Origin: Pocillopora damicornis
Taxonomy: Eukaryota
Direction of reading: 5' to 3'
Length of the DNA: 64,000 bases
Assembly: GCF_003704095.1 (NCBI RefSeq)
Contig: NW_020843717.1
Location: forward strand, 124,001-188,000
The position numbers were made by a program, and so were the translations under genes. The notes beneath the pieces were generated by a model. It did no database searches. It was not told the DNA's origin and saw only the letters and a list, made by a program, of their open reading frames with translations. Of this stretch, positions 277-29,600 are shown piece after piece (position 1 is the stretch's first letter; each line of letters starts with the position of its first letter).

Positions 277-3200
277 GTTCAATGCCCCCCCATTCCCATT
301 CAGTCTTTGATGAGGGAGCTGTATTTATGTCATTTAAATTGGTGGAGAAAGGAATCTTTCAAGAAGAAGGTAATCATCTCATCTATGAGTGTCTTGAAGC
401 AGCAATCCCATTGTTTTCTTGGAATTCCCTGTCCACAATTTATTTGATCATGACATGTAGTTTTTGTGATTGACTAGCTCTAAAGGTAAAGCTGTTGGAG
501 CCTGCTAACTACGCAGGTTGTAGTGGAAGTCGTAATTTGCAGGACAACATTTCAGACTTAAAGGCACAGGTGGCTGCAAATCACAAGGTAAGGGGAATTT
601 GCCTCTCTTTTGATCCACTGAGCACCTAGGTTTCCCTATCATGATACAACTTATTACTTCTTTGTCTGTACCCCTTTACTTCCCATGAGTGACAAAACTA
701 AGACAGAATTTCTTCCTGCAACATCAAGCAGACAAGTGATGAGAAGAGAGAAAAATGTAAATTAGGGGATTGCTAGAAGATCCAATAACAAATTCTTCAA
801 ACTAGCATTACAGGAATTGTTTGGCAGACAGTGAGGAGAATTACTTTTAAGATCTGGGAGTGAAATGGATAAACAGAGTGTGCAACAGTCTCATTTGGTG
901 TCTCATGGGTTTCACGTCTGTGGTAGTAGGACCATTGAATGAAAATTTCACATCTTTTTACTGTAGGGAATCAACCTCATAAATGCACTTATAGATGAGT
1001 ATAGTCTTCCTGTTGTGCAAGCCTACATGGGTTACATTCAGGTATGGTAACATTTTATTGTTACTCTGAAAAGTGATTACATTTAGTTATGGCATCACTA
1101 TAAAACCTCAAGTATACTCCAGTTTTGACTGCTTTGATCTCAGTTTTAAGAACTTCACTGGAAACATGCTTCAATAAAATAAGTATAAATGAAATATATC
1201 AATTCTTTTGTTCATGAAGTTCAGTTGAACTTTTTTTTGTGGAAGTTCATCATAATTATACTCAAAGTTTGTCAAGAGTATGTTGAATTTCTGTAAGAGT
1301 ACTAACAAATTTTATCAATCTTTCTTTTTAGCAAAATGCTGAGTTGGCTGTTAGAGAAATGCTCACAGAAATTGGTCTGAAAACAAAAGTAAGGATGAAA
1401 TGAGTGCTATGTTATTCTTAATTAATAATTAAAAATAATGTTATTCTTAAAATTTAACTGTGTTCTAAGCAAATGCTATGTTTTGTCAAATTTGTATATG
1501 TCAATAAAAGTAGTCTAACAGTAACTGCTTCCTGTAATAGGAAAGAACAGGAAAGTCAGTACTGCATGCATTGGAACATATGGATGATGGGACTCCAATT
1601 AATCTTACAATTTCTATTGATGAAAACAAGGTACCTACAGTTCATTTTGAATGGCTTTTTTTTTTTTTTTTTACTTTTTTGTTGCTTCTTGTTTTATTTT
1701 TGCTAAGGATAGGATTGGTGCAGAACAAAAGACTCTCTGCATCGATTCTATCTTCTCTTACCTGCTGGATTATAGCAAAAATTATTTAATAAACTCATTT
1801 AAAGGCGATTGTACCTAAAAGAAGACATCAATAATTTTTGTATCTGGTTACAGGGGTCAGCAGTATTTAATTTTGCTGGAACAGGCCAGGAGTCATATGG
1901 AAACTGTAATGCTCCACGGGCCATTTCTCTTTCTGCTATTATCTATTGTTTACGAAGCATGGTTAAGCATGATATTCCTCTTAATCAGGTACAAGAACAA
2001 ACAATTGTAAAGCCTAATGAAAGTATTTTTACATAATTATTAAACAATCAAGAAGTGTGATGAAATATTCATAAAAGCAAACCTAATTCAAGCAAAACTG
2101 GTCTCTTTGAATGTGTTGGTTGTTGTTGTATACAAGGAGCACCCGGACTGGTAGCATTTAATTGGAGCCGGTGCATAATGAAATTTTGATGGTAACTTTG
2201 AACTTGCGGTCAAACCTGGGCAAAAACATTTTATTTGCAATGGGTTCATGTTAACTTTCTTGGTGGAAGCATGATCATCTCCTGATTTATCCATTATGCA
2301 TAAAATCAAGCAGTTTGAGCATGGGTGTTGGGCTGGGTAATGGTATAGTGTTCTGGTACTGAGCGAGACCCTTATCCCTCTTTTCCACAAGTTCATCCCT
2401 GTCAACTCTTCTGGCTTGTCTTGGGTTCTCCAGGACTTGGAAAAAATCTTCTGGTCTCTTATACAGTTGCCTAAATATCCTGGATAATATTAAGTGGGGT
2501 GCAATAAGAAACTTTTGGTTTGTGGGGAAAGACTCAGATAAAGCAGTCAATCAACAAATTTTGGCTAGGGAGGGGATCAAACAAAAAGAATCCTCCAAAT
2601 TGCAGATGTTTAAGTTACTCAACAAACTTCTGTGCTGTTTCTTGCAGGGTTGTCTGGTGCCAGTAAAAGTACATATTCCTCCTGGTTGTCTTTTAGATCC
2701 TTCACCCTCTGCAGCAGTGGTTGGAGGAAGTGTCCTGACCTCACAGAGGGTTGTGGATGTCGTTCTCAAGGCTTTTGGTGTATGTGCAGCGTCACAGGTA
2801 TTAAAAAGTTAACATTCTTATATAAGTTACTTGAGCCTTGGAGAACTATCCTGTGTTATCAGTAAAATCCCTTGGGTTGCCTGCAAACTGGCCTGAAATG
2901 TTGGTTATCTTACTTCAGTTATCAGCAAACTTACCAGGGTCAATAACAGACTTGTTTGAGAGGTTAGTTAATTGCCACAGTGGTTGGCAAACGGTTTTTA
3001 AGATTTAGTTGAAATTGCCAGAGTTATCTGCAAGCTTGCCTAAGTTGATTTGTCTGCAAACTTGCCTCAAACTAGGTAGGGTTGTCTGTAAACTTGTCTT
3101 AGTTGTTGGCAAAATGGCATAAGTCGCAGGCAAGCTGTTGCAAGTTGTAAGTGATCTCACAAACTTATTTCCTTTTTCAGGGCTGTATGAATAACACAAC

Positions 3201-4364
3201 TTTTGGTGACGAAGGTTTTGGCTATTATGAGACTGTGGCTGGTGGTGCAGGCGCTGTACGTTTTCAACTAAAAATGCTCTCTAGGCATGTTTATCTTTGA
3301 CATTGCCATCTTCATGCATCATTACTGCCATGGCAATTGTCATTGTCATTACTTTAAAGCATACAAGGGAAGTAAACTACAAAATAGTTCTGATTATACA
3401 CACACACACACACACACATACAGCAATAGCATTTGCATTGTGACATACCTTTTGAATATATGATAGAAATGAGTTGGAGTTTCTGTTAAGGGTCCTACAT
3501 GGATTGGACGAAGTGGTGTCCACACCCACATGACAAATACACGGATAACAGACCCTGAGATCATAGAGCGAAGGTATGTAAAGAGAAAGTAGTACTGCCT
3601 GGAGTATCCTCAAAGGGCACAACAGCAACAATTATGAAAGTATTTAAATGTTATTGTGATCCAAAGAGAAGCTACTTAGTAGCTAATTGTGTTTCTTCTT
3701 GGTTAACTATGAACATTTCAGTTTGCCCCGGTCTGCCATTAGTCAACTTATTTTTAGTTTTGCCATCAACTCTGAAACTTATTAAAACTAACAAGTATAC
3801 TCTGGTGTTCAGTCATTTAAATTTTTGATATGTTGAAATCACTCTTAACCTTTTGAAGATCAAGGCTCTAGTTTGGGCAGCCATTATTATCCTCGAAAAA
3901 GAAAAAAAAAGGCTGGAGCAACGAACTGAAGCAAGTTCATATGATCACAAAACAGTAACAGCCAATTCATTGGGAGACAAATAAATTAAAATCCTATGAT
4001 TATAAGCTAGAACTGCTACACTATATAGATAGTGCCACAAAATATTGGACTGACAAGCAGGCTGAGCTGCAAACATTTTGGGGAAAGGCAGATCACAATT
4101 GCTGCAGTGTATTCATTTGCATTTGCATTTGTATCCTACCCAGAAACTAGTCCCATACTACATGTGTCCAATATGTTACATTCCTTGTCATTCCCTATAG
4201 GTATCCTGTCATTCTTCTTCACTTTCATCTCAACCCTGGTACTGGAGGTGATGGTTTTTACAAGGGAGGGGATGGTGTCATTCGAGAGTTGATGTTCAGA
4301 AGAAAACAAGTCTTGTCAGTTTTGTGTGAGAGGAGATCAGCATTTCAACCCTATGGACTACAAG
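277..4364 (+). CDS. OPLAH: 5-oxoprolinase (ATP-hydrolysing), copy A; partial, hydantoinase B-domain exons only (5' part lies outside the window, last exons lost in gap 4372-4471)
   Basis: GT-AG exons 277-369, 478-587, 967-1041, 1332-1388, 1541-1630, 1854-1988, 2648-2797, 3181-3255, 3491-3573, 4201-4364 splice in frame. They give [102 protein letters not shown], all typical of eukaryotic OPLAH. Confidence 0.95.
671..872. mobile_element. Degenerate MITE family 1 copy
   Basis: CCCTTTACTTCCCATGAGTGAC..AGACAGAATTTC..CAGACAAGTGATGAGAA..GATCTGGGAGTGAAA. Confidence 0.7.
3398..3418. repeat. (CA)n microsatellite
   Basis: Run of ACACAC... directly visible. Confidence 0.85.
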
Positions 4365-5452: not shown

Positions 5453-8400
5453 TCATTCTATCATTATGACAGAGTCTAAGGCAGGTTTTTTTGTGCTGCT
5501 TGGTGGGGTAAGTGGTTTAAATGATTCGATGTTTGGAGATCTTGACCTGTTTTCTGCTGTTTCTTTACCAAGAGTGCTTTGAAGAGCTAAAGCTTTATCC
5601 TGAAAAGGAATTATGACATTTTACAATTAAATACAATAACAGTACTAATTTCCTAAGGTACCTCCTTGATTATTAACCCTTTAACTCCCATGAGTGACCA
5701 AGACAGAATTTCTCCTTACAATACCAATACAGCATCAACCAGACAAGTGATGAGAATAAAGAAAAACATCAATTTGGGGATAATTAGTTGATTCAATACT
5801 AAATTGAATCAACTAATTAATCAATACTCTGAACTAACATGAAAACTGTACGATTAACAGTAAGAAGAATGACAAATTTAATCTGGGAGTTAAAGGGTTA
5901 AAGACGAAAACTTCTTGAATTCACATTTTGATTATATTTGCTTTTAACACTAGAAACCTTTGGCCAGGCCCCTTCTAAGCAAAAATTTACAAATAGTTTA
6001 TTTTTAATATTTAAAGGAGGAAGCCACTGAGAGGTGTACAAAAGTGAGCAACAGTGGTTTGATGAAATGGAAACTTGATTTTAGATCATGATCAAGTTTG
6101 ACTTCTGTACATGGGTAGGTCTATTAATACCACTGCTGGTCACGATATGGAGAATACGATGACCTGAAGTACTATTATAGACCACTAAGATCCTAATATT
6201 TCCCTTGAACTCTATACACTTCAACATCTATATGCATATTCTCCACACTGCTCTCTGTACATTTTCCAAGGAGCCAGCAAGGAGAATTTGGTTAACAATC
6301 AAGGGGTTCTTTAGTTGGTGATCATTTCCTGTATTCTCATGACCTTCAACTTTGATTCAGGGGCAATGGGTAGGGAGAAATTAGATGCTAGTCACTCTTA
6401 GGGGTGAAAGGATTAAGCCAGTAGTAGAGGTATGAACAAGTGCCATCATCATGTAAAGATCTTTTTAAGTTTTCACTTACAAGTGATGCTATGTCTACTG
6501 CATGAGTTTGGATGTTGTGAGCATCTTCACGTTGAACTTGTTCAAAACTTCTGATGGTCGCTGCTCCTTTTTCCATTATGATGTGGGCAAAAGATGTCAT
6601 CCACTGAATACATGGGTGAAGTTCCTCCCGTGAATGTCCTGGAATTCAATGTAAGATAACTTAAATAACTAGTAGAGCACAATAATTATTGACCTTTCTC
6701 ATGAGCTTTGGCAATGGTCACAAAGTCATATTGTTGCTTGCAAGGAGTTTGAGTCGCTAAAAGTTCATCAGGGTTTTCTTTTAAAAATGTAGCAGCGGGA
6801 AAATGGATCAAAGTCACCATAGAATTCTGTGAAAAATTTTAACCCTTTAACTCCCAAGATCTCATTAGTAATTCTCCTTACTATCTCCTATACAGTTCTT
6901 GTGATGTTAGTTTAGAGGATTTAGTATTGGATCATCTTATAATCCCCTAACTGATATTTTTCTTTATTCTCATAACTTGTCTGCTTGATATTGTTTTGAT
7001 ATTGTAAGGAGAAATTCTTTCTTGGTCACTTATGGGAGTTAGAGGGTTAAACAAGCTAAGGTGCTGGAGAATTCCCTGATCTCCAATGGCTGATCAACAC
7101 CCTGTCCATACAAGACTGCCTCTTGAAGAACTGAGCAAAGTTGTAGTTACTGTATATCACAAATATGTTGCAATGCAATTTTGCCAATACCTCTCTATGT
7201 GCAGGAATCATTGTCTTGCAACAGTTACATCATCCATTACCTGAACACAGGATGTTATTGCAAGGCTGATCTTTGTTCCTTACCTGTAACTTGTTCAACA
7301 TTAACTGGAAGCATGTGGTAAAGAGCTGACGCAGCTAGAATACTGTAGGAGAACTGCAGTGAACCCACATCCAGGATGCACAGATCTAAAAGCTAGAAAA
7401 AGAAATAAAATTAAGGCAGCAATCAACACTATTCTCAGATAGTACCACTGGATGTATTTTGAAACCTAAAGCTGAAATATTAGTAAATGGAATATTCTTA
7501 GCAGCAGAAGAATAAATCCCCTGTTAAGTGGTTGTAACATTATGTTATGAGCATACATTTTACTCAATGCAGGTATTTTTCCCTCCCCAACAGGGCTCAC
7601 AAAAACATCACACAACTTGCATAATATGAATTGATGTCAGTATCAAAATATCAGGTTAATTTTGGGTTAGGGATTGGGTGGGTGTGCAGCTGCACTAATA
7701 AGACATAAATGCATCTATGCATACGTGCATAGGTACTTAAAACAAAGAAAAAGTTAAAGACTAAGAGGCAACCGATCACACATTGAATAGACAATAAATA
7801 TGCAAGGGAAGACCTACTTGTGCAACTTCAACAAATCTTGGTTGTGAGTAGTTAGGGATGCTGAAGTTTGATGTTTTACCGTTTTTACTTGTTACACAAG
7901 ACAACTGTAAATAGATATTTAACCATGAATTGACAGTGATTGGTGTTAAATTCCAACACAACCCCTGTAGACAAGAAAGCAATAAATAGATGAGTGAAAA
8001 GTGTGTTTACTAAGTACATGCAAGTGGAACATTCCATGGTATACCACAAGAGAGTCTTGGAATCAATGTCAGTATCTGACCAACTGCACACCTATCCCTT
8101 CCCTGATCCAACAACAGTCAAATTGTAACAGGTTAGGGTTAGCATTGGGTTAGGGGAAGGTAGATGTGCGGCTGCTCAGATACTGAAATTGATCCAAGTG
8201 TTGCATGACTGTTTTACACATGAAATGCAATAGAAAATAAAGCAACTAATACTTAATATCAGAATGCAGTTCAAACATTCAAAGTTCAAAAACAAAATGG
8301 TTTGAAAGCAGAAATGAGACTTCTCCCTAAATGCATGCTGGGAAGGTTTGGGTTGATACCATTGAGTGTAAAAAGCTTTCTTCCACTCTGATTGACTTTC

Positions 8401-15900: not shown

Positions 15901-17621
15901 CCTGTTTGCACCAAGTGATATCTTTATCATTCTGTCTGTAATTTACATCACGACACTTGATAGTCACCCAGACCTCCCATGGCGAAATGTGCTTGTAGCC
16001 AAATCGATAAAGGAGGGTTCTTTTCTTTTATGCATTCAAAGTGGTGGGGCGTTTGAGATTTGAGATCAATACCACATATACAATCCCCTTCATGAACTTA
16101 GCCTTTGAGGACAATACGCGGGCTATCGTGTAATTCGCGGCTTGGGCAGCCACAGACGATACGCTAGGAAGCCTGAACACAAGGATTATCGGCGCACGAA
16201 GAATGCTTGGAGCATACTCACGTAAAACTCTCCTTCATCCACTGTTGTAGTTAAATCATGAGCAAGTGGCACACGTGCATGTCTCGTCGACTTGTCTGCC
16301 ACTAAACGTTTTACTCAGAAATGGGCCGCCTTCATGTCTGGAATTTCAGCCAGGGTGTCATCATTCCTCTTATTAAATGCAAATAGTAGTCGCAACCCAC
16401 AAAGAGGCATTTAAATTCGCGACACTTTTTGATGCTCCAGAGGGACTACAATGGTTAAGGTGTTTTTCTCCTGCCCTTGCGCTTGATTCCATGCCCAATT
16501 AGCCTTCTCTCCGGACAATAGAAAAGTCAAAAGTTTGCTTCTACAGAGACAAGGGAAAGGGCTAATGGAATGCAACTAGCCACCACATCGTTAAAGAGGT
16601 GCTCGATATCCTTGGGTTTCATTGAAGTTAAAAAAAATTAAACACTAACTACTGAATAATCACTAATGCATCCCACTTTCTCGACCAGGATTAAGAAAAA
16701 TAGAGAAAAATGACACTCAGCAAGTTAAATCTCGTTGGATCTTGTTTCCACCCTTGTAAATACGCAAATGAACACAGACTATACCTAGTCGCCTCGCTCT
16801 AAGCTCGGAGAAATTATTATTTTCCTAACTTATGTAAGCGATTGGCGAAACCTACTAACATAAATTTGCCTTGACTGTTTGCATCTGTGTTCTTAAACAA
16901 CCGAGGCTTAAGTTGTTTCTTACCTTAATCCAATACCTCCATTTCACTCACTATTGGTCTCTATTCTGAAGTAAAACTATTCCAAAAGTCCTGTCCTGCT
17001 TCATTTTAATTGGAAAGGTTTTGTACGCAGTGAAGTGCAGTAGACCTCATTTGAAGATGTTGACGCTTAACAGCTGTAATTACCGTGTTTGGGCCCTCCG
17101 TTGCGCCGAAGGTCACGCAGGTGTGGTTGCGGAGCTAGGCTGTGCACATGTGCTCAGCAATCATTTCATTTTTTAGCATACTTTGTTATTGTTAGGTTAT
17201 TCGAAGTCACGTTTTCTAAATTTGCAATGGTTGGCCTGTTTTGAAAATGAAGATTAATAAATGAAGATACAAAGTGAAAAGTTCAGGACGGCCCGTTGGG
17301 AAAAACTGGCGCATGACTGGTCCGTAAACTTCGAAGAAACAAAGAAGAATTTTAATCTTAATCTTGCCTTGGGGAGAATTAATTAATCCTGCCAACCTGA
17401 AAAAAATTTAGGTTACGTTCATTCGTGTTATCTTTATCATTGCTATGACAAAAAAATCCAGCATGACATTTTAGAGACTTAAATGCTGAGAAATTTAGAA
17501 CTCAGTTATATTCATTCAAAANNNNNNNNNNNNNNNNNNNNNNNNNNNNNNNNNNNNNNNNNNNNNNNNNNNNNNNNNNNNNNNNNNNNNNNNNNNNNNN
17601 NNNNNNNNNNNNNNNNNNNNN

Positions 17622-20600
17622 GAACTTGCTCTTTTCTAAACAGCAGCTCGCGTATAACACCGTCACCACCCCTGTGAAAACCATTCCCACCAGTACCGGG
17701 GTTGAGATGAAAACGGCGCAGAATCACTGGAAACCTAGCAAGGGCGGAAAACATATCAGTCTAGAGCCCAGGCTTACTCTTTCTAAACCTTTTCAAGTGA
17801 CAACAAACCAGTCGAGGCCTTCACTAGTTTTCCCTAACCCAACTAATCCTTGTGGAGTTAGAATGTGCCAAGTGTTCTGAACTACGTTTTTTCTTTTTCG
17901 TATTTTGAACAAACTTTGTTCTTTCCTCTTTTGAGTCCCAATATCTAATTAGTAATTCTCCTTTTAAATCTGACACACGTCTCGAGGTAAATATGTTGAA
18001 AAATTTTGGAAAATAATCGAGACTGAGGTCGCGTAACATCCCATCCTCCCACTGTTCCCCCGGGGTAGCCGTTAATCTCGTGAAAATTATCAGCTAAGCT
18101 ACCTTCTTTCGATTATCTCTGGATCTGTGATCCTTGTGTTTGTCATGTGGACATGAACTCCACTGCGTCCGTCCCATGTGGGTCCCTGCGAAGAGGATAG
18201 GTGCCTTCTTTCAAAAATTAACACAGTATCATCTACATTTATGTCTACAATTTTTTTAAAAAGTACTCATTTGTTTTTATTTGGCCACCAATAAGATGGT
18301 TGAATAAATTTAGGTCAAAGAAACGCAAACAACAAACAAATCTCAAGTTTGCTGCTGGGAACAAACAAGAAAGACTGTAGAGCGCTTTTCGACTGAGATT
18401 CGTAAAACCAAACCTTCAAGAGAGAAATAGCCAATCTGAGCAAAGGTCAACAACACAAGTAGCCAATGGAACTTAACATTACCAAACTCAAGGGCGGACA
18501 TACACGCATTAACAAGTCACGACTGGTTTACTTTTGTATCTGTTTGGACGACAGGTTTTCCGAATTTATCAGAGAGCCAAATGTAGCAAAACCATACAAA
18601 GCTGGATTATTTTCGACACTCAATTGAACACTTATCTTTCACATAACTGATCAGATCATTCGTCCTTAAGTGACCAGTAACTTAAAATCCTTAGTGGAAA
18701 CAACTCACCGCCCCAGATCCTCCGCAGATTGTCTCGTAGTAGCCGCATCCTTCGTCGCCAAAGGTCGTGTTATTCATACAGCCCTGTCACACAGGTGGAA
18801 AGTGAATTAGACAGACAATAAACACACTTACCGCCCCGGATCCACCACTGATTGTCTCAATATACTGGCAATGCTGATCTCCAAACGCGGTTATGTTCAT
18901 ACATCCCTATACAAAGCGATACCTCGCTGTCAGTAGTACACATTCCTTTTAGGCTTTGCGGCTATAAGTTGAAATTAAGTGTGCGAGACATTCCAGGGCA
19001 AGTGACATAACACGTGACTTCTCACTAACCTGTGACGCAGCGCACACTTCAAAGGCTTTCAGCACCACGTCAACAACTCGCTGACTAGTCAATACGTTCC
19101 CGCCAACAACTGCCGCAGTTTCCGTTGGATCAAGAACGCTAGCAGGCGGAATAACTACTTTTACTGGCGTCAAACAACCCTGAAGGAGGGAAAAAACAGT
19201 GTTGACGGGTCTAAAAATTTTCATAGTATTGAAGCCTCTGAAGGATTTGGTAAATTATCTAGATAAACGCAAGGAAAACAGACGCAGCTTATAATTACCT
19301 GGTTCAGCGGTATCGAGTGTTTGACCATGCACCGCAGACAGTAAATAATGGCAGAGAAGGTGATGGCGCGAGGTGCATTACAGTTCCCGTACATCTCGGG
19401 TCCAGTTCCTGTGAAGTCAAAGACTGCGCTGCCCTGAAACGAAATAGTAATAACTTCATCGAAAAGTACCCTTCGCTGAAACCTTTACAGCTTTATTTTT
19501 TACACTGAGTACAAGTCTTAAACAAAGAAAGTTGTTCACTTAAATTAACGTTACAGGAGGCCGTTCAGTCTTGGAAGACTGAGAACTTTGTTGAATGACC
19601 TTAAAATTTCAAAATTCTGCCCCAGTATACTTGGACAATTGATTTGGTTATGGATTCCATTAAAAATCTTATATTGAACTAGAATTCCACGTCCTCATGT
19701 GAAGACTATCTACCTCTTTCTCGTCGATGGAAATTGTAAGTTTAATGCGCGATCCATCATCCATGTGATCCTCGGCGGATAGTACTGTCTTTCCGGTGCG
19801 TTCCTGCCGATTTGACAGGAAAACAAAAGTCACAAATAAAAACTCTACCCGCAAAAGATTTGTCAAGATGAAATGTCAAATTTTTTCGGGTAAAGAAAGA
19901 CGGGTATCCCTCTCTTTTTGCTGTGCATCAATAGCTGTTACCTAAGGTTTCCTGATTAATTCTGCTGCAAAGAGCTTTTTCCAATTAAAGCTAGTCACAA
20001 CAACCAATCAGAGCAAGAAAAACATCACATAGAGCCAATGAAAACAAAAAGTGGATATGACGTAGTCGACCTGAAGCGCGGGAAACACGAATGACAAAGT
20101 CACGATCGGTTTAAGTTTTGTATCTGATTGGCTGAAAGAATGGCGCGTTTCTAGACCAATCACAGGACGCAGTGAAACAATACCTATGCAATCATGCACT
20201 GTTCATGTAGTTCTGTCATATTTCCTCACCTTAGTTTTTGCAGCAATATCTTTCAGCATTTCTCGAACAGCAACTTCGGCATTATGCTAAAATAAACGCA
20301 AAAAAAATTCACTGAAATAAGAATTATTAAAACAATCTTCAACACAGACCAAGTTACTTTTATATTTCGTTGGAACAGCTTCTGAGAATCTCACCTGAAT
20401 ATACTTCATGTATGCCTGCACCACGGGCAGGCTGTATTCTTCTATCAAGCTACTAATCAATTTGATTCCCTATAAAGTAAAAATACCAAATATGCTATCA
20501 ACGAGCCGAGATATCACATAATCATCGCCCAATCACAGGGCACACGTCTCTATTGTCACCTGTGTAATTAGACTCGATTGAATTTAAATATAAGACTATC

Positions 20601-23600: not shown

Positions 23601-26600
23601 GTAATTTTCAGACCCAGTATGTCGTGTAATGAACATTGCAGTTAAGTTTAGAACGTTAAACGCGTTACACCACTTCTGTTTCATTTTCAGATTCAAGATG
23701 GAGTTTCGTGCGAGGAGAAGGAAGCAAATGGTTCAAGAAAGCTGCAACTTACTTACTGCCCGCCGCGCCTCTTGGCGCATATAGCAGCGACGAGATCAGA
23801 GAGCTGCAAAGCAGGCGTTTTTAAGGAAGCGCATCGACCGCTACCTTAGTGCCTATTCATGTCTCGCCCAAACCATGCACTGTTTTCACAACACACATTT
23901 CGCTTAGAAGAACATCAAAAATTAGTCGGGAAGCTTTCCATTAGACAATATACCAATTTACTAATAAAGCAAACAAAACCTCAATCTTGATGTCTCCTGA
24001 TGAAGTGATAGACGCTTTGCATTGTGGTTCAACAAGAACGGTACTGAAAAACAAACATCAATTTAATGAATACTCTTCTTGTGTTTGTTTGTGATTAATG
24101 TGTGGTTCATTTTAAACCTCGTTCACCTGGTATTATTTACGATAATGGCCGGTCCATCTATAAGCTGGCCAGCGGACAACTCCTCAAGGAGGTACACCTT
24201 CGTGTCATGAAAACCATCTTCAAAGTAACATTTCGTTGTCTAGTGTAAGAAAGAAAAGCGTAAGCAGACCTTGTGTTTTCGTGGCTATTCCAAAGAAACC
24301 TCAACCTGATGGCCACTTAGTTGCCTCTAAAAGTCCCAGTGATTGACATGTAACTTCTCCCCAAAATTGCAATGTCTCATCCAACAGACAGGTGATGAGA
24401 ATAGAGAAATTGGTCTACAAGTTACCAGACCATTTTCTCTTGACTTATTTGCAAGGAAATTTTTGGCAGCCAGGAGAGTAGAATTATTTAAAATCAGATT
24501 CAAAGAGTTGAAATTCTCTTATTAAGATTTCATTGGATCTGCGATTTTTCCCTTAAGAATCTTATCCATGAGACATGGGTGTAAACTTAAATCTGAAAGA
24601 CGTTCGTAAGAATACCTTTTTCACCGGGGGAGGGGTGCTCGCTTTTGGTATTTCATGTGATACGGATGTCTTAGAGTGTCCAGTCCCTCTCACTCTGATG
24701 TCATCAATTAGGATCTGTCTGTTAGGTATCGTGAAACCAAATTCCCGAACGTATCTTCAGTAATAAAAAGAAGAAAAAAAATTCAAGATTAAATTAAGGG
24801 GGAAATATACATGAAAACACAAATCATTTTAGATAAAAGTCTTTACCGTTCCTTAAACGCCTGTCCAAAATCACCATGGCGACAGGTTTCTCCTTCCTAG
24901 AAAAAGAAAGCAATCAATACTACTTTTTCTTGATTCCCGTTTGGCACGATGGACGATGGACAATGGACATCGTAAATGACGAAACTTTTCACTTACAGCA
25001 AAAAAGACGCAGAATTGTTTTTTTAAACCAGGTTAAGCTGGAGATGAGGTAAACAAAAAAGTCCTACCTTTGTGTCTTTCTGAGGATCAGCAGTACACAT
25101 GAGCGCGCAGTCTGTTCCACTGTACCGCATATGAAGGAATGCTTCTGTGGAGATCTGGTTCCTTAAAANNNNNNNNNNNNNNNNNNNNNNNNNNNNNNNN
25201 NNNNNNNNNNNNNNNNNNNNNNNNNNNNNNNNNNNNNNNNNNNNNNNNNNNNNNNNNNNNNNNNNNNNAGCAATTAGTTGTCTTTCAGGCCGAGCTAAAG
25301 GGTGCGGGAATGTTTGCAAAAAAGTCTTTGGAAAACCGGAAGTTGTAGAAGAGGAACCTTTTGATGGCCATTTCCAGTTTTCGAAATTTTAGCATACTGT
25401 TCCTTTACTTCACGCGGGGACACAGTCACAAATGAAGATTACTCAAAAACGAAACAGGTTCCCCTGTAGAGCGCTTTTCTATTCAGTGCCGTGAATTCAA
25501 AACGAAAGTGTTTACATTAGCCAAGCAGAAACAAATATAACAAAAGAATCCCATACAACCTTAGATAGATCAGCCGAATGGACCTTAAGAGAGAAAACGC
25601 AAGTGACCAAGTTGAGGTTAGGTGTGGTTTTACATCTATTTTTCGTAGAGGATGGTGTGCCATATCAGGTTACTGTCGACACCCATTGGATTATTGTTTC
25701 ATTCGAACGGCCCCATGTTATTAACTTATTTCTTCAGCTAATTTTTTCTGTTTTCTATTCCAGGTAAATGAATTCCTAGCCTCCCAGGACGACGGCGCAA
25801 AGAAGGATCCTTTAACGGTGGAACAGGTTGCCATGGGGTTCATTACAGTTGCTAACGAGACCATGTGTCGACCAATCAGAGCGCTTACTGAGGCCAGAGG
25901 CCATGACACTTCACGTCATGTTTTGGCTTGTTTTGGTGGGGCCGGTGGCCAGCATGCTTGCTCCATTGCACGGTCCCTGGGAATGTCATCTGTGTTCATT
26001 CACCGGTAAGGAGAAAACATCAGTTTTTCGCAATTCATGTAAAAAGAGGAAAGCATTCGTCATTCTTATCCTCAACCGCCTTTTTGGTCCATGAACACTT
26101 TCTATTGAGTACTAGAAGTTATTCTGAGTTGCTTTCCTTTTTCTTCCTTTTTGATTGGTTCTTGTTAAACATTAACGCGTTTGGTTTTCACTTTGAGTTC
26201 CCATTGGCTCGTTGTGAAATTTTTTCCGTTGTTTTGATTGGCCGTCTTAATTCCGTTGGGTTTGGTGTTAAAAGCGCCCTCATTTACGTTTTGGCATTCG
26301 ACACTACTGGGTCAGGATTACACGGATACAGACCAAGGATACGTTTTTTACGGCGATGACGAGATTTAACGGATGGGGCTGTCGGCTTTATCGCCCTCTC
26401 TGTGAATAGTGAAAGAGCATTTGTAATACACCCCACAAATACAGCACCACAGATTCTTTAGAAACTTACCCCCGCTATTCATATTGAAAACTAGTTGAGA
26501 CTGAAACTGTAACTCAAGGCTAATATTTAAATAAACTGTTGTCTTACTCAATCCATTATTACAAATAAACCGAGAACTGATACAACTTTTTCAAACAGAT

Positions 26601-29600
26601 TTGGTGGTATTCTGTCCGCGTACGGACTGGCCTTAGCAGATGTGGTTCACGAGGCGCAGGAACCGTGTGCACGTGAATACAATAAAGGTAACAGGCTAAT
26701 GTTTCTTTTATATGATTTGAGTTCAGTAAAACGTCCAGCNNNNNNNNNNNNNNNNNNNNNNNNNNNNNNNNNNNNNNNNNNNNNNNNNNNNNNNNNNNNN
26801 NNNNNNNNNNNNNNNNNNNNNNNNNNNNNNNNNNNNNNNTTTCATAAAAGAACAGCATATACGTCATACTCAGGTAGAATCCTGCAAAGCACTAGGTTTG
26901 CATCTGTCACAGCCAATGGACCACCTAAGAAAATTAACAGATTTTGAAATTGCTTCTTTTAACTTTGCCTTCTAAACTCTTGGCTAATTACAATTATAAT
27001 GAGTCACCATAGACGGGTGTTGGTAAAAGCATGGAGAGGGAAAAGAAGTCACAAAGTTCCCTTAGGGGATGGGAGGGAGGAGGAGAGAGTGTTGTGTGAT
27101 GAGCCATGACCCTTTAACACCTAAGAGTGACTAACATCTAATTTCTCCTTACAACATCACCCCTGAATCAAACATTAAGGTCATGAGAATAAAGGAGATG
27201 ATCACCAACAAAAGAAGCTTTTGATTGTTGAACAAATTCTCCTTGTCAGAACCCTACGAAATGTCTGGAGAGTGGTATGGAGAATATTCATACTGACGTT
27301 AGGGAGTAAAGGGTTAAGGATGGCTAGCAAGGAGACCAGGTAGAAAAAGGAGAAAAAAGCAAACCATCTGTTCTTCTTTTCTGTTCTACTTGTGAGCATA
27401 AACTCACCTTTTCGGTAACAAACAGGTCCTGGATGGGCACTGGCTGACTCAGGTCCAACAACGAATAGCCCCGCCCTGAAAAATAGGCGAGATCCACCTC
27501 CTGCTGCCACAGTGTTGATGTCCAGCTACAAAAACAATTATCACAAAAAACAGTCTTTCAAGACCAGTTCATATTAACAAATTTCAGTTGGTAACTCAGT
27601 CCACTGATTTCTCTGAGTGGTTTTTTAATAGGCCATTTTGCAGTTGTGTACTTAGTTTCCAAGCCTTTGATTTGGAGTGAGGCTGAAGTTGACCATGTTG
27701 TGATAGAGACCAGTATGTACTTAGCATGATGACATTAGAAAAACAGTATGGTTTGTATCATAACAAGGTCACCCTTAGCCTCATTCCTGTTCAAAGGCTT
27801 GGCAACCAAGCATGCAACTGTAAAATGAACTATTCCAAGGAAGGACTACAATTTTTCTTTTTCATATTCAATGCATAAGTTGTTGTCATAATTGTATACT
27901 TTGAAGTTTTGACTCCAAAAAAGTAAACTTGTGTGAGTACCAGACAGACCAAGATACACTTCTTACTCTGGTTTGCATTTCAGCATTTCAGATGATATCA
28001 TGTTACTTTAAATTAAGTTTTCCCTTTTCTAGTAATATCTGAAAGTATTTGATTAAATGAAGATCTGATGGATAACAGAACAATTCATACATGAAACTAT
28101 GGGTGTCAGAATTCAGAGTTCTTGAGATACCACAATGAGAAAGAATGAAAATTATCCAAACCAAACCTCATACCTGCGGTGCCTGTATAGTGATTCCTGC
28201 TGTTGTTGTCTCAAACACATGTTCATATTGACCAGCAAATCGAGACACATCTGTTGATGTTCCTGAAGAAAAAAACTGTATAGTTACTCACCAGTATGCA
28301 GCTGCAAAAAAATACTTAACTAGGACATTACATTACTTTGGTAAGAATTATTTAGGAATATGTTGAGATTTAAATCTAGGATGTGAAGAAAGTCTGGCTA
28401 GGACAAATTACTGTTATAGGAGACACTGCATCACAAAAAAAATTCTCACCGAATCATCTCAATCAATGTAATTTGGGACTGCACTCTTTCTTCAAACATT
28501 TGGTGCAATATAATTAAATTGAAAATAGAGACACATTCTTAACACTACTTTTACCATCATTTTAGCTGTAACAAATTTCCAGTAAAAATATCAGACCTAT
28601 TCAAGATCAAATAACATGATAATGTTTTATTCTTTTATTACCTCCCATATCAAATCCAATGACTGGTTGCTCTGTCTCTCTGTGAAAAGTTGTCATTGCA
28701 TAACCAACCTGAGCAAAAAGCAAACTCTATTATCCTTTTGGAAAAAAAAGTCAAATGAATAAAACTTTGGAACCTACCACACCACCTGCAGGTCCAGACA
28801 AAATGGCCCTTGATCCATAAAACCTGCAAAAACACATTACAAATTACTGTGCAATTAATTGGAAACATGTTAAAATATCCAGTGGATATCACTTCCTTAA
28901 CTACACATACCGTAAATGACAATTACAGTATAATAGCAATATTAATAACAATAATAATTAATTGATTGATAAACAAAATGACAATAATATCAATTACTTA
29001 TAAACTTTGTTGACACAGTTCATTTAATTCAGGTTGAGGTAGAAAGCAGGGCTTAACCCTTTAACTCTCATGAGTGACCAAGACAGAATTTCTCCTTACA
29101 ATATTAATATAACATCAAGCAGAAAATTAATGAGAGTAAAGAAAAATATTAACTAAGGGATTACTAGTTGATCCAATACCAAATTCCCCAGACTAACATC
29201 ACAAGAACTCTACAACAGACAGTAAGGAGAATTACTCACGAGATCATGTGAGTTAGAGGGTAAAGTATAATTATACAGTAAAAAAAACATTGTAATGCTT
29301 TTCTATAAATTACCACTTACTTTGACACAGGAGTCAAGCCGCCATCAGACTGCATAAACAACACTTTGTCCTGCAAAAAGATCAATCATAAATTAACACT
29401 GTAATACAAAAATAACACTGCGCTTCACAATCTACATTGTTATCAAAAGCAATGGCAAATTATTAAACACACAACATGACAATGACACAAATAAACCATC
29501 TTGTCTTGAGACAAGGTTCCTCACCCCACCCTTCCCAGAAATATTTGCACTCTGTGATTTCACAATAAGCTGCTCTGAGAGTGGATAAAAACACAGCTTT

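Follow-up and report, generated by a model that had tools for sequence, protein, structure and literature searches.

One of the two 5-oxoprolinase genes of the coral Pocillopora damicornis carries a tandem pair of homologous 75-nt coding exons, X1 and X2, which is ancient and maintained by selection. We consider it likely that the two exons are mutually exclusive through steric hindrance, X2 being the default and X1 a diverged alternative, and that a by-product retaining the short intron between them (the mini-intron) is non-functional. The pair lies on the minus strand of the window, the whole stretch of 64,000 nucleotides that was analyzed. According to this model, a 75-nt exon of paralogue B would have been duplicated in tandem in the ancestor of the sampled stony corals, and both copies would have been kept as coding exons since then, X2 with the ancestral sequence and the default role, X1 diverged yet conserved. 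A productive mRNA would have one of the two between the constitutive exons E and D, X2 in the form E>X2>D and X1 in the form E>X1>D.

Exon-by-exon analysis with Pfam placed all Hydantoinase_B matches of the whole genome on this contig, in two genes, paralogues A and B. Copy B carries the Hydantoinase_B (PF02538) and Hydantoinase_A (PF01968) domains in a single gene, as in the fused OPLAH type, and tblastn showed it to be collinear, from about 33654 down to 17635 on the minus strand, with residues 4-1181 of a 1282-residue insect 5-oxoprolinase. The exception is residues 437-551, found on the plus strand at 25761-26704. They belong to a plus-strand segment (25269-26739) that contains two copy B exons and fits exactly between the 100-N gaps at 25169-25268 and 26740-26839, for which reason it is most likely a contig flipped in scaffolding and not a real inversion or a broken gene. 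Another 100-N gap (17522-17621) falls in the 3′ part of copy B. Since an RNA contig from run X11, one of the runs described below, spans it with 1177 letters of its own, about 1.1 kb is probably missing from the assembly at this place, perhaps with the last coding exons in it. Short translated similarities (16-38 residues, 52-75% identity) between 5692-6890 on the plus strand and 24337-29260 on the minus strand tie the region 3′ of copy A to copy B introns; they show no collinearity with the gene and probably represent repeats present in both places. A homologue search with the beetle protein P0066 returned insect and vertebrate sequences only, owing to the beetle origin of the query, and did not reach a coral full-length protein or annotated isoform; the primate proteins among these hits were left aside.

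The upstream constitutive exon E (19030-19179, minus strand, 150 nt) encodes 50 codons ending in CAASQ, matches Pfam Hydantoinase_B and was also covered in the tblastn search with the full-length 5-oxoprolinase; its RNA joints are 19178>19298, 18782>19029 and 18905>19029. It is separated from X1 by intron 1 (18907-19029, minus strand, 123 nt), in which a branch-like CTGAC motif, seen in the alignment of the orthologues, precedes the X1 acceptor by about 25 nt. Exon X1 (18832-18906, minus strand), the variant cassette, comprises 75 nt in phase 0 (25 codons), flanked by a tttgtatAG acceptor and a GTAAGT donor, and its open frame in the window extends over 38 residues. The mini-intron that follows (18784-18831, minus strand, 48 nt) opens with this GTAAGT donor and contains, at 18806-18810, a branch-like CTAAT motif separated by 25 nt from the donor and by 23 nt from the acceptor, as well as an in-frame TGA at 18787-18789. 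Exon X2 (18709-18783, minus strand), the ancestral-type cassette, again has 75 nt in phase 0 (25 codons), here between a gtgtgacAG acceptor and a GTGAGT donor. Intron 3 (18186-18708, minus strand, 523 nt), also covered by low-depth unspliced RNA contigs, leads to the constitutive exon D (18103-18185, minus strand), with joints 17732>18101 (cut +2), 18184>18708 and 18184>18831; the RNA joints thereby confirm 19030 and 18185 as the borders of E and D that face the pair. The original prediction had described two homologous phase-0 exons of 75 nt, 48 nt apart and each with its own AG and GTRAGT, opposite a single exon of this kind in copy A (3181-3255, plus strand); this anatomy proved right in every detail.

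X1 and X2 are identical at 50 of 75 nucleotides and 18 of 25 residues and differ at about 13.5 of 16 synonymous sites. Compared with the homologous exon of copy A, X2 gave a dN of 0.10 versus 0.33 for X1. A single cassette exon was also found in the copy-A-type orthologues (L037-L039) and in a more distant 5-oxoprolinase (L025), which assigns the duplication to the copy B lineage. The pair recurs in 19 independent contigs of other coral-derived assemblies, so that it is not a chance feature of the sequence, and an artefactual duplication in the assembly was rejected on the same ground. A retro-copied origin was also considered, as hinted at by an 11-nt likeness between the end of exon E (ctgcgtcacag) and the end of the mini-intron (ctgtgtgacag). 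This likeness was taken as chance, other lineages matching at 5-9 of 14 positions; it does explain an odd loose end in the RNA contigs, described below.

Exon E, searched against protein representatives, returned open frames called on genomic contigs of related animals. Nine copy-B-like frames of this kind were looked up for their orthologous loci, and eight further loci came from JGI metagenome contigs scanned with a profile of X1; the nearest outside contigs came from Tara coral metagenomes. When the 46-residue frame of locus L014, orthologous to the X1 frame, was used as a query, just three short proteins were found. All 19 orthologous loci keep X1 followed by X2, each exon with its AG and GTRAGT, and neither a stop codon nor an indel was found in X1 or X2 in any of them. 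The sample is deep, as indicated by a synonymous divergence of the flanking exons E and D above 1 between the main lineages. The loci contain 15 distinct nucleotide sequences of X1, encoding 12 distinct peptides in which 20 of the 25 residues are invariant (C-terminal consensus [IV]ETISGG[SA]GA), while X2 is nearly invariant.

The variable sites of X1 are distributed 5/3/18 over codon positions 1, 2 and 3 (chi-square p 5e-4), and the codon model gave an omega of 0.20 for X1, with twice the log-likelihood difference reaching 31.3 against an omega of 1, and of 0.043 for X2. The comparison of relatives and the dN/dS calculation proposed with the original prediction thus found both exons everywhere, with decay or absence of X1 in none of the 19 loci. 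Gene conversion was rejected as the cause of this coding-like conservation, because the synonymous differences between X1 and X2 are saturated and because the X1-specific residues (I5, A7, Q14, I/V16 and S20) are common to all lineages. On the strength of the deep conservation and of its omega, X1 is a coding exon under selection. Between deep lineages, synonymous divergence was 0.3-0.9 for X1 and 0.5-1.0 for X2, versus 1-3 for the constitutive flanks, in a small sample; such a lowered value is common in alternative exons carrying splicing signals.

These data bear on a first rival explanation, in which X1 would be a decaying or unused pseudo-exon left by the duplication and its inclusion splicing noise. 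Exon X1 had no coverage in the assembled contigs of two of the four RNA runs (X1 and X5), it alters residues that are invariant in other 5-oxoprolinases, and its acceptor in the window is the weaker TAG, all as expected of such a relic. A relic would not, however, have remained intact together with its splice sites in 19 loci whose lineages exceed a synonymous divergence of 1, free of stops and indels, with an omega significantly below 1 and with the same specific residues in every lineage. The pseudo-exon reading is thus already contradicted by the conservation, and we regard it as very improbable.

The preferred reading, in which X1 and X2 exclude one another sterically, draws on the dimensions of the mini-intron. 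Its length over the 19 loci is 37, 48, 51, 52, 55, 56, 57, 58 or 59 nt (the 37-nt mini-intron, in locus L024, was read by eye), compared with 108-876 nt for intron 3 and 123-768 nt for intron 1. Introns of about 47 nt are spliced in some animals, and this counts against the steric reading. In all eight loci examined for it, a CTAAY motif lies 25-34 nt downstream of the X1 donor and 23-25 nt upstream of the acceptor of X2. It is accepted that with less than about 50 nt between donor and branch point U1 and U2 are sterically prevented from assembling on the same intron (PMC5740500, PMC7969005). With the branch point predicted from the motif, the donor-to-branch distance falls below this value, as in the steric class of mutually exclusive exons, and the mini-intron would stay in the transcript because the predicted branch site, 25-34 nt from the X1 donor, leaves less than the roughly 50 nt that U1 and U2 need. 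Reading through the mini-intron leads to a stop codon or a frameshift in 19 of 19 loci.

Splicing was followed in assembled RNA contigs, in which rare variants are dropped and which show presence, not absence or ratios. Out of 22 runs from 11 studies, four runs (X1, X5, X11 and X17) from four studies were compared over 17400-19700. E>X2>D splicing was found in all four. The X2>D joint (18709>18185, listed as 18184>18708) was recovered in each run, and the E>X2 joint (19030>18783) appeared as joint rows in two runs (X1 and X5) and, in the other two (X11 and X17), as 17 loose letters at 18794 matching 19041-19057, 11 nt from the end of exon E. The E>X1 joint (19030>18906, listed as 18905>19029) was present in two of the four runs, X11 and X17, so that at the level of these contigs the proposed junction check did not return an exon X1 that is never included. 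The X1>D joint (18832>18185) was found in run X11 only, in one contig, at a depth of 18.1 versus 41.5 for X2>D. Just 23 letters support this joint on its shorter side, and such joints carry a caution, even if a branch in an assembly graph of 31-mers would be expected to leave sides of 23-30 letters. Mature transcripts containing one exon or the other were therefore recovered, the X1-only form being thin, with a single contig and this 23-letter shorter side. No joint between E and D, skipping both exons, was found in the assembled contigs of the four runs.

Runs X11 and X17, the two with exon X1, carry a 3-nt insertion (AAC after 18821), giving a mini-intron of 51 nt, and differ from the window in a few other places; their source is a close relative or another genotype. 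A 35-nt deletion in intron 3 (18464-18498) distinguishes the same two runs from the window, and it and the AAC insertion are length polymorphisms between close lineages. Elsewhere in intron 3, at 18378-18415, contigs of several runs match over just 35 nt and run into unrelated sequence at either end, which suggests a short element, repeated and expressed elsewhere.

The same contigs speak to a second rival, in which both exons would normally be included and add a 25-residue repeat to the enzyme. As both exons have 75 nt and phase 0, the frame would indeed be kept if the mini-intron were removed. No joint removing the mini-intron (18784-18831) was found in the assembled contigs of the four runs, though, and routine spliced inclusion of both exons, which would have told against exclusive use, was accordingly not seen. 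This explanation is already contradicted here by that result, and the mini-intron, with 37-59 nt, is at or below the usual steric limit, read-through ending in a stop or frameshift in every locus; we find it barely credible. The constant shortness of the mini-intron, the lack of a splice joint across it in these contigs and the contigs that retain it make it most likely that the mini-intron is unspliceable, which would render X1 and X2 mutually exclusive by forcing the choice of one of them in any productive mRNA.

Both exons nevertheless co-occur in a third form. In runs X11 and X17 the mini-intron was retained, giving an E>X1>mini-intron>X2 transcript with a stop codon, a form that the original prediction had not anticipated. 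The retained contigs cover 18758-18860 in run X11 and 18758-18905 plus 29 nt of exon E in run X17. In the latter run, this stop-containing form was the sole form of X1 recovered, with a depth of 66.9 for the retained contig, whereas exon E reached 117.6 and unspliced intron 3 stood at 8.6. As the retained contig is far deeper than unspliced intron 3, most such molecules must already have lost intron 3, and the retained form is thus an end product and not an intermediate. It would arise when splicing uses the acceptor of X1 together with the donor of X2, which leaves the mini-intron in place and introduces the stop codon or frameshift; such a product presumably has no function and would be subject to nonsense-mediated decay. 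The exclusivity is consequently not clean at the RNA level, and the use of X1 is partly unproductive and, judging from run X17, can be mostly so. The idea of mutually exclusive use is supported insofar as X1 and X2 are alternatives in RNA with no X1>X2 splice in these contigs, and is qualified insofar as the retained mini-intron joins them in runs X11 and X17. Similarly, exclusion through short spacing agrees with the short spacer of every locus and with the lack of a removing joint in these contigs, while the retained form suggests that it leaks. Steric hindrance is the probable cause of the exclusivity, and its leakage would yield the unproductive form as a frequent by-product.

The retained form could also be given the main role. 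Exon X1 would then serve chiefly as a regulatory poison cassette, the stop in the retained mini-intron lowering the output of paralogue B, and no X1-containing enzyme would matter. The E>X1>mini-intron>X2 contigs of both runs, the exclusive recovery and depth of the retained form in run X17 and the stop or frameshift found on retention at all 19 loci are what this explanation would predict. It requires, on the other hand, no conserved frame or peptide, whereas X1 keeps 20 of its 25 residues, varies mainly at third positions and has a low omega, and the X1>D joint of run X11 has a depth equal to that of the retained path. We therefore consider a purely regulatory X1 unlikely, and retain the coding alternative with an unproductive by-product as our working model.

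Regarding the protein, X1 departs from the family at strongly conserved positions. In 84 distinct 25-residue cassettes from other 5-oxoprolinases, N5 was found in 84, T7 in 82, G14 in 83 and Y16 in 84, and X1 carries I, A, Q and I/V at these four positions. The proposal that X1 changes conserved residues, MNN to MNI and GYYET to QYIET, is borne out in that N5, G14 and Y16 are near-invariant. In a family-profile alignment of low identity, which may be one residue off, the cassette corresponds to residues 363-396 of the caprolactamase subunit CapB (6YRA). The pocket of CapB involves residues A365, I368, V386 and S389 (PMC8453981), which in this low-identity alignment fall on cassette positions 3, 6, 15 and 18. 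X1 and X2 do not differ at any of the four (M, T, Y and T), and the changes in X1 adjoin them. The alignment places the cassette at the predicted start of the distorted-barrel domain of the hydantoinase-B half, beside the metal and the substrate pocket, so that the two isoforms should differ in this region; exchanging X1 for X2 would change the neighbourhood of the pocket in a conserved way. A solved structure was not found with the 25-residue cassette alone as the query, and no publication on the N-methylhydantoinase structures (7HK5 and related entries) emerged from our literature search.

More tentatively, the X1 isoform, present in each of the stony-coral lineages sampled, might be a neofunctionalized 5-oxoprolinase, a possibility that we raise from the sequence and hold with less than even confidence. 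The replacements N5>I, G14>Q and Y16>I/V, beside the pocket-lining positions, could allow the enzyme to act on a different lactam or to couple ATP use differently. Alternatively, X1 might yield a subunit with altered catalysis which, paired with paralogue A or the standard isoform, would tune the flux of the glutathione cycle. If X1 were neofunctionalized, then X1, X2 and the stop-containing retained form could constitute a regulated three-way switch.

Exons 2 and 3 of alpha-tropomyosin are a mutually exclusive pair enforced by steric hindrance. Exons 4a and 4b of OGDH are another (PMC7969005), and 57 candidate clusters of mutually exclusive exons have been listed in human (PMC5740500). Like the alpha-tropomyosin and OGDH pairs, the coral exons are adjacent and homologous, equal in length and phase, with fewer than 50 nt between the donor of the first and the predicted branch site of the second; the intron between them has been kept short over long evolution, and the exons provide alternative versions of one structural segment. 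Unlike in those pairs, the coral intron measures 37-59 nt in its entirety and is not an intron of ordinary size whose branch point lies far from the acceptor, both exons have lengths that are multiples of three so that the reading frame does not enforce exclusivity, the retained-intron form is readily assembled from RNA, and the host is a cnidarian metabolic enzyme. The pair also resembles exons 3 and Ab of U2AF1 (PMC5224494), a tandem duplication with one near-ancestral and one diverged copy, both conserved, but the regulation of U2AF1 relies on shared repression and branch-point choice in larger introns (PMC5224494).

At the protein level, the likeness to the CapB/hydantoinase-B fold (PDB 6YRA; PMC8453981) lies in the alignment of the cassette with the pocket-lining start of the barrel, whereas 5-oxoprolinase is a fused single chain and the bacterial enzymes have no alternative splicing. 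The E>X1>mini-intron>X2 form, with its premature stop or frameshift in every lineage, recalls poison exons and intron retention coupled to nonsense-mediated decay; X1 differs from a pure poison exon in being under purifying selection as a protein sequence.

Tandem-duplicated mutually exclusive exons are a known type; our literature search did not turn up a described case in 5-oxoprolinase or in any coral. Insects, nematodes and vertebrates have been the subject of much work on mutually exclusive exons, which are, to our knowledge, barely documented in cnidarians. The coral pair is a clean example, conserved in depth, whose likely mechanism is very simple, the intron being too short for splicing, and could be used to test the steric rule in early-branching animals. 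It offers enzymology a natural pair of variants with which to probe the role of the conserved GCMNN...GYYET segment. For the coral itself, 5-oxoprolinase, an enzyme of the glutathione cycle, exists as two paralogues, one of which can apparently swap a segment predicted to lie beside the active-site pocket, and the pair provides an isoform-level marker for coral stress and redox biology.
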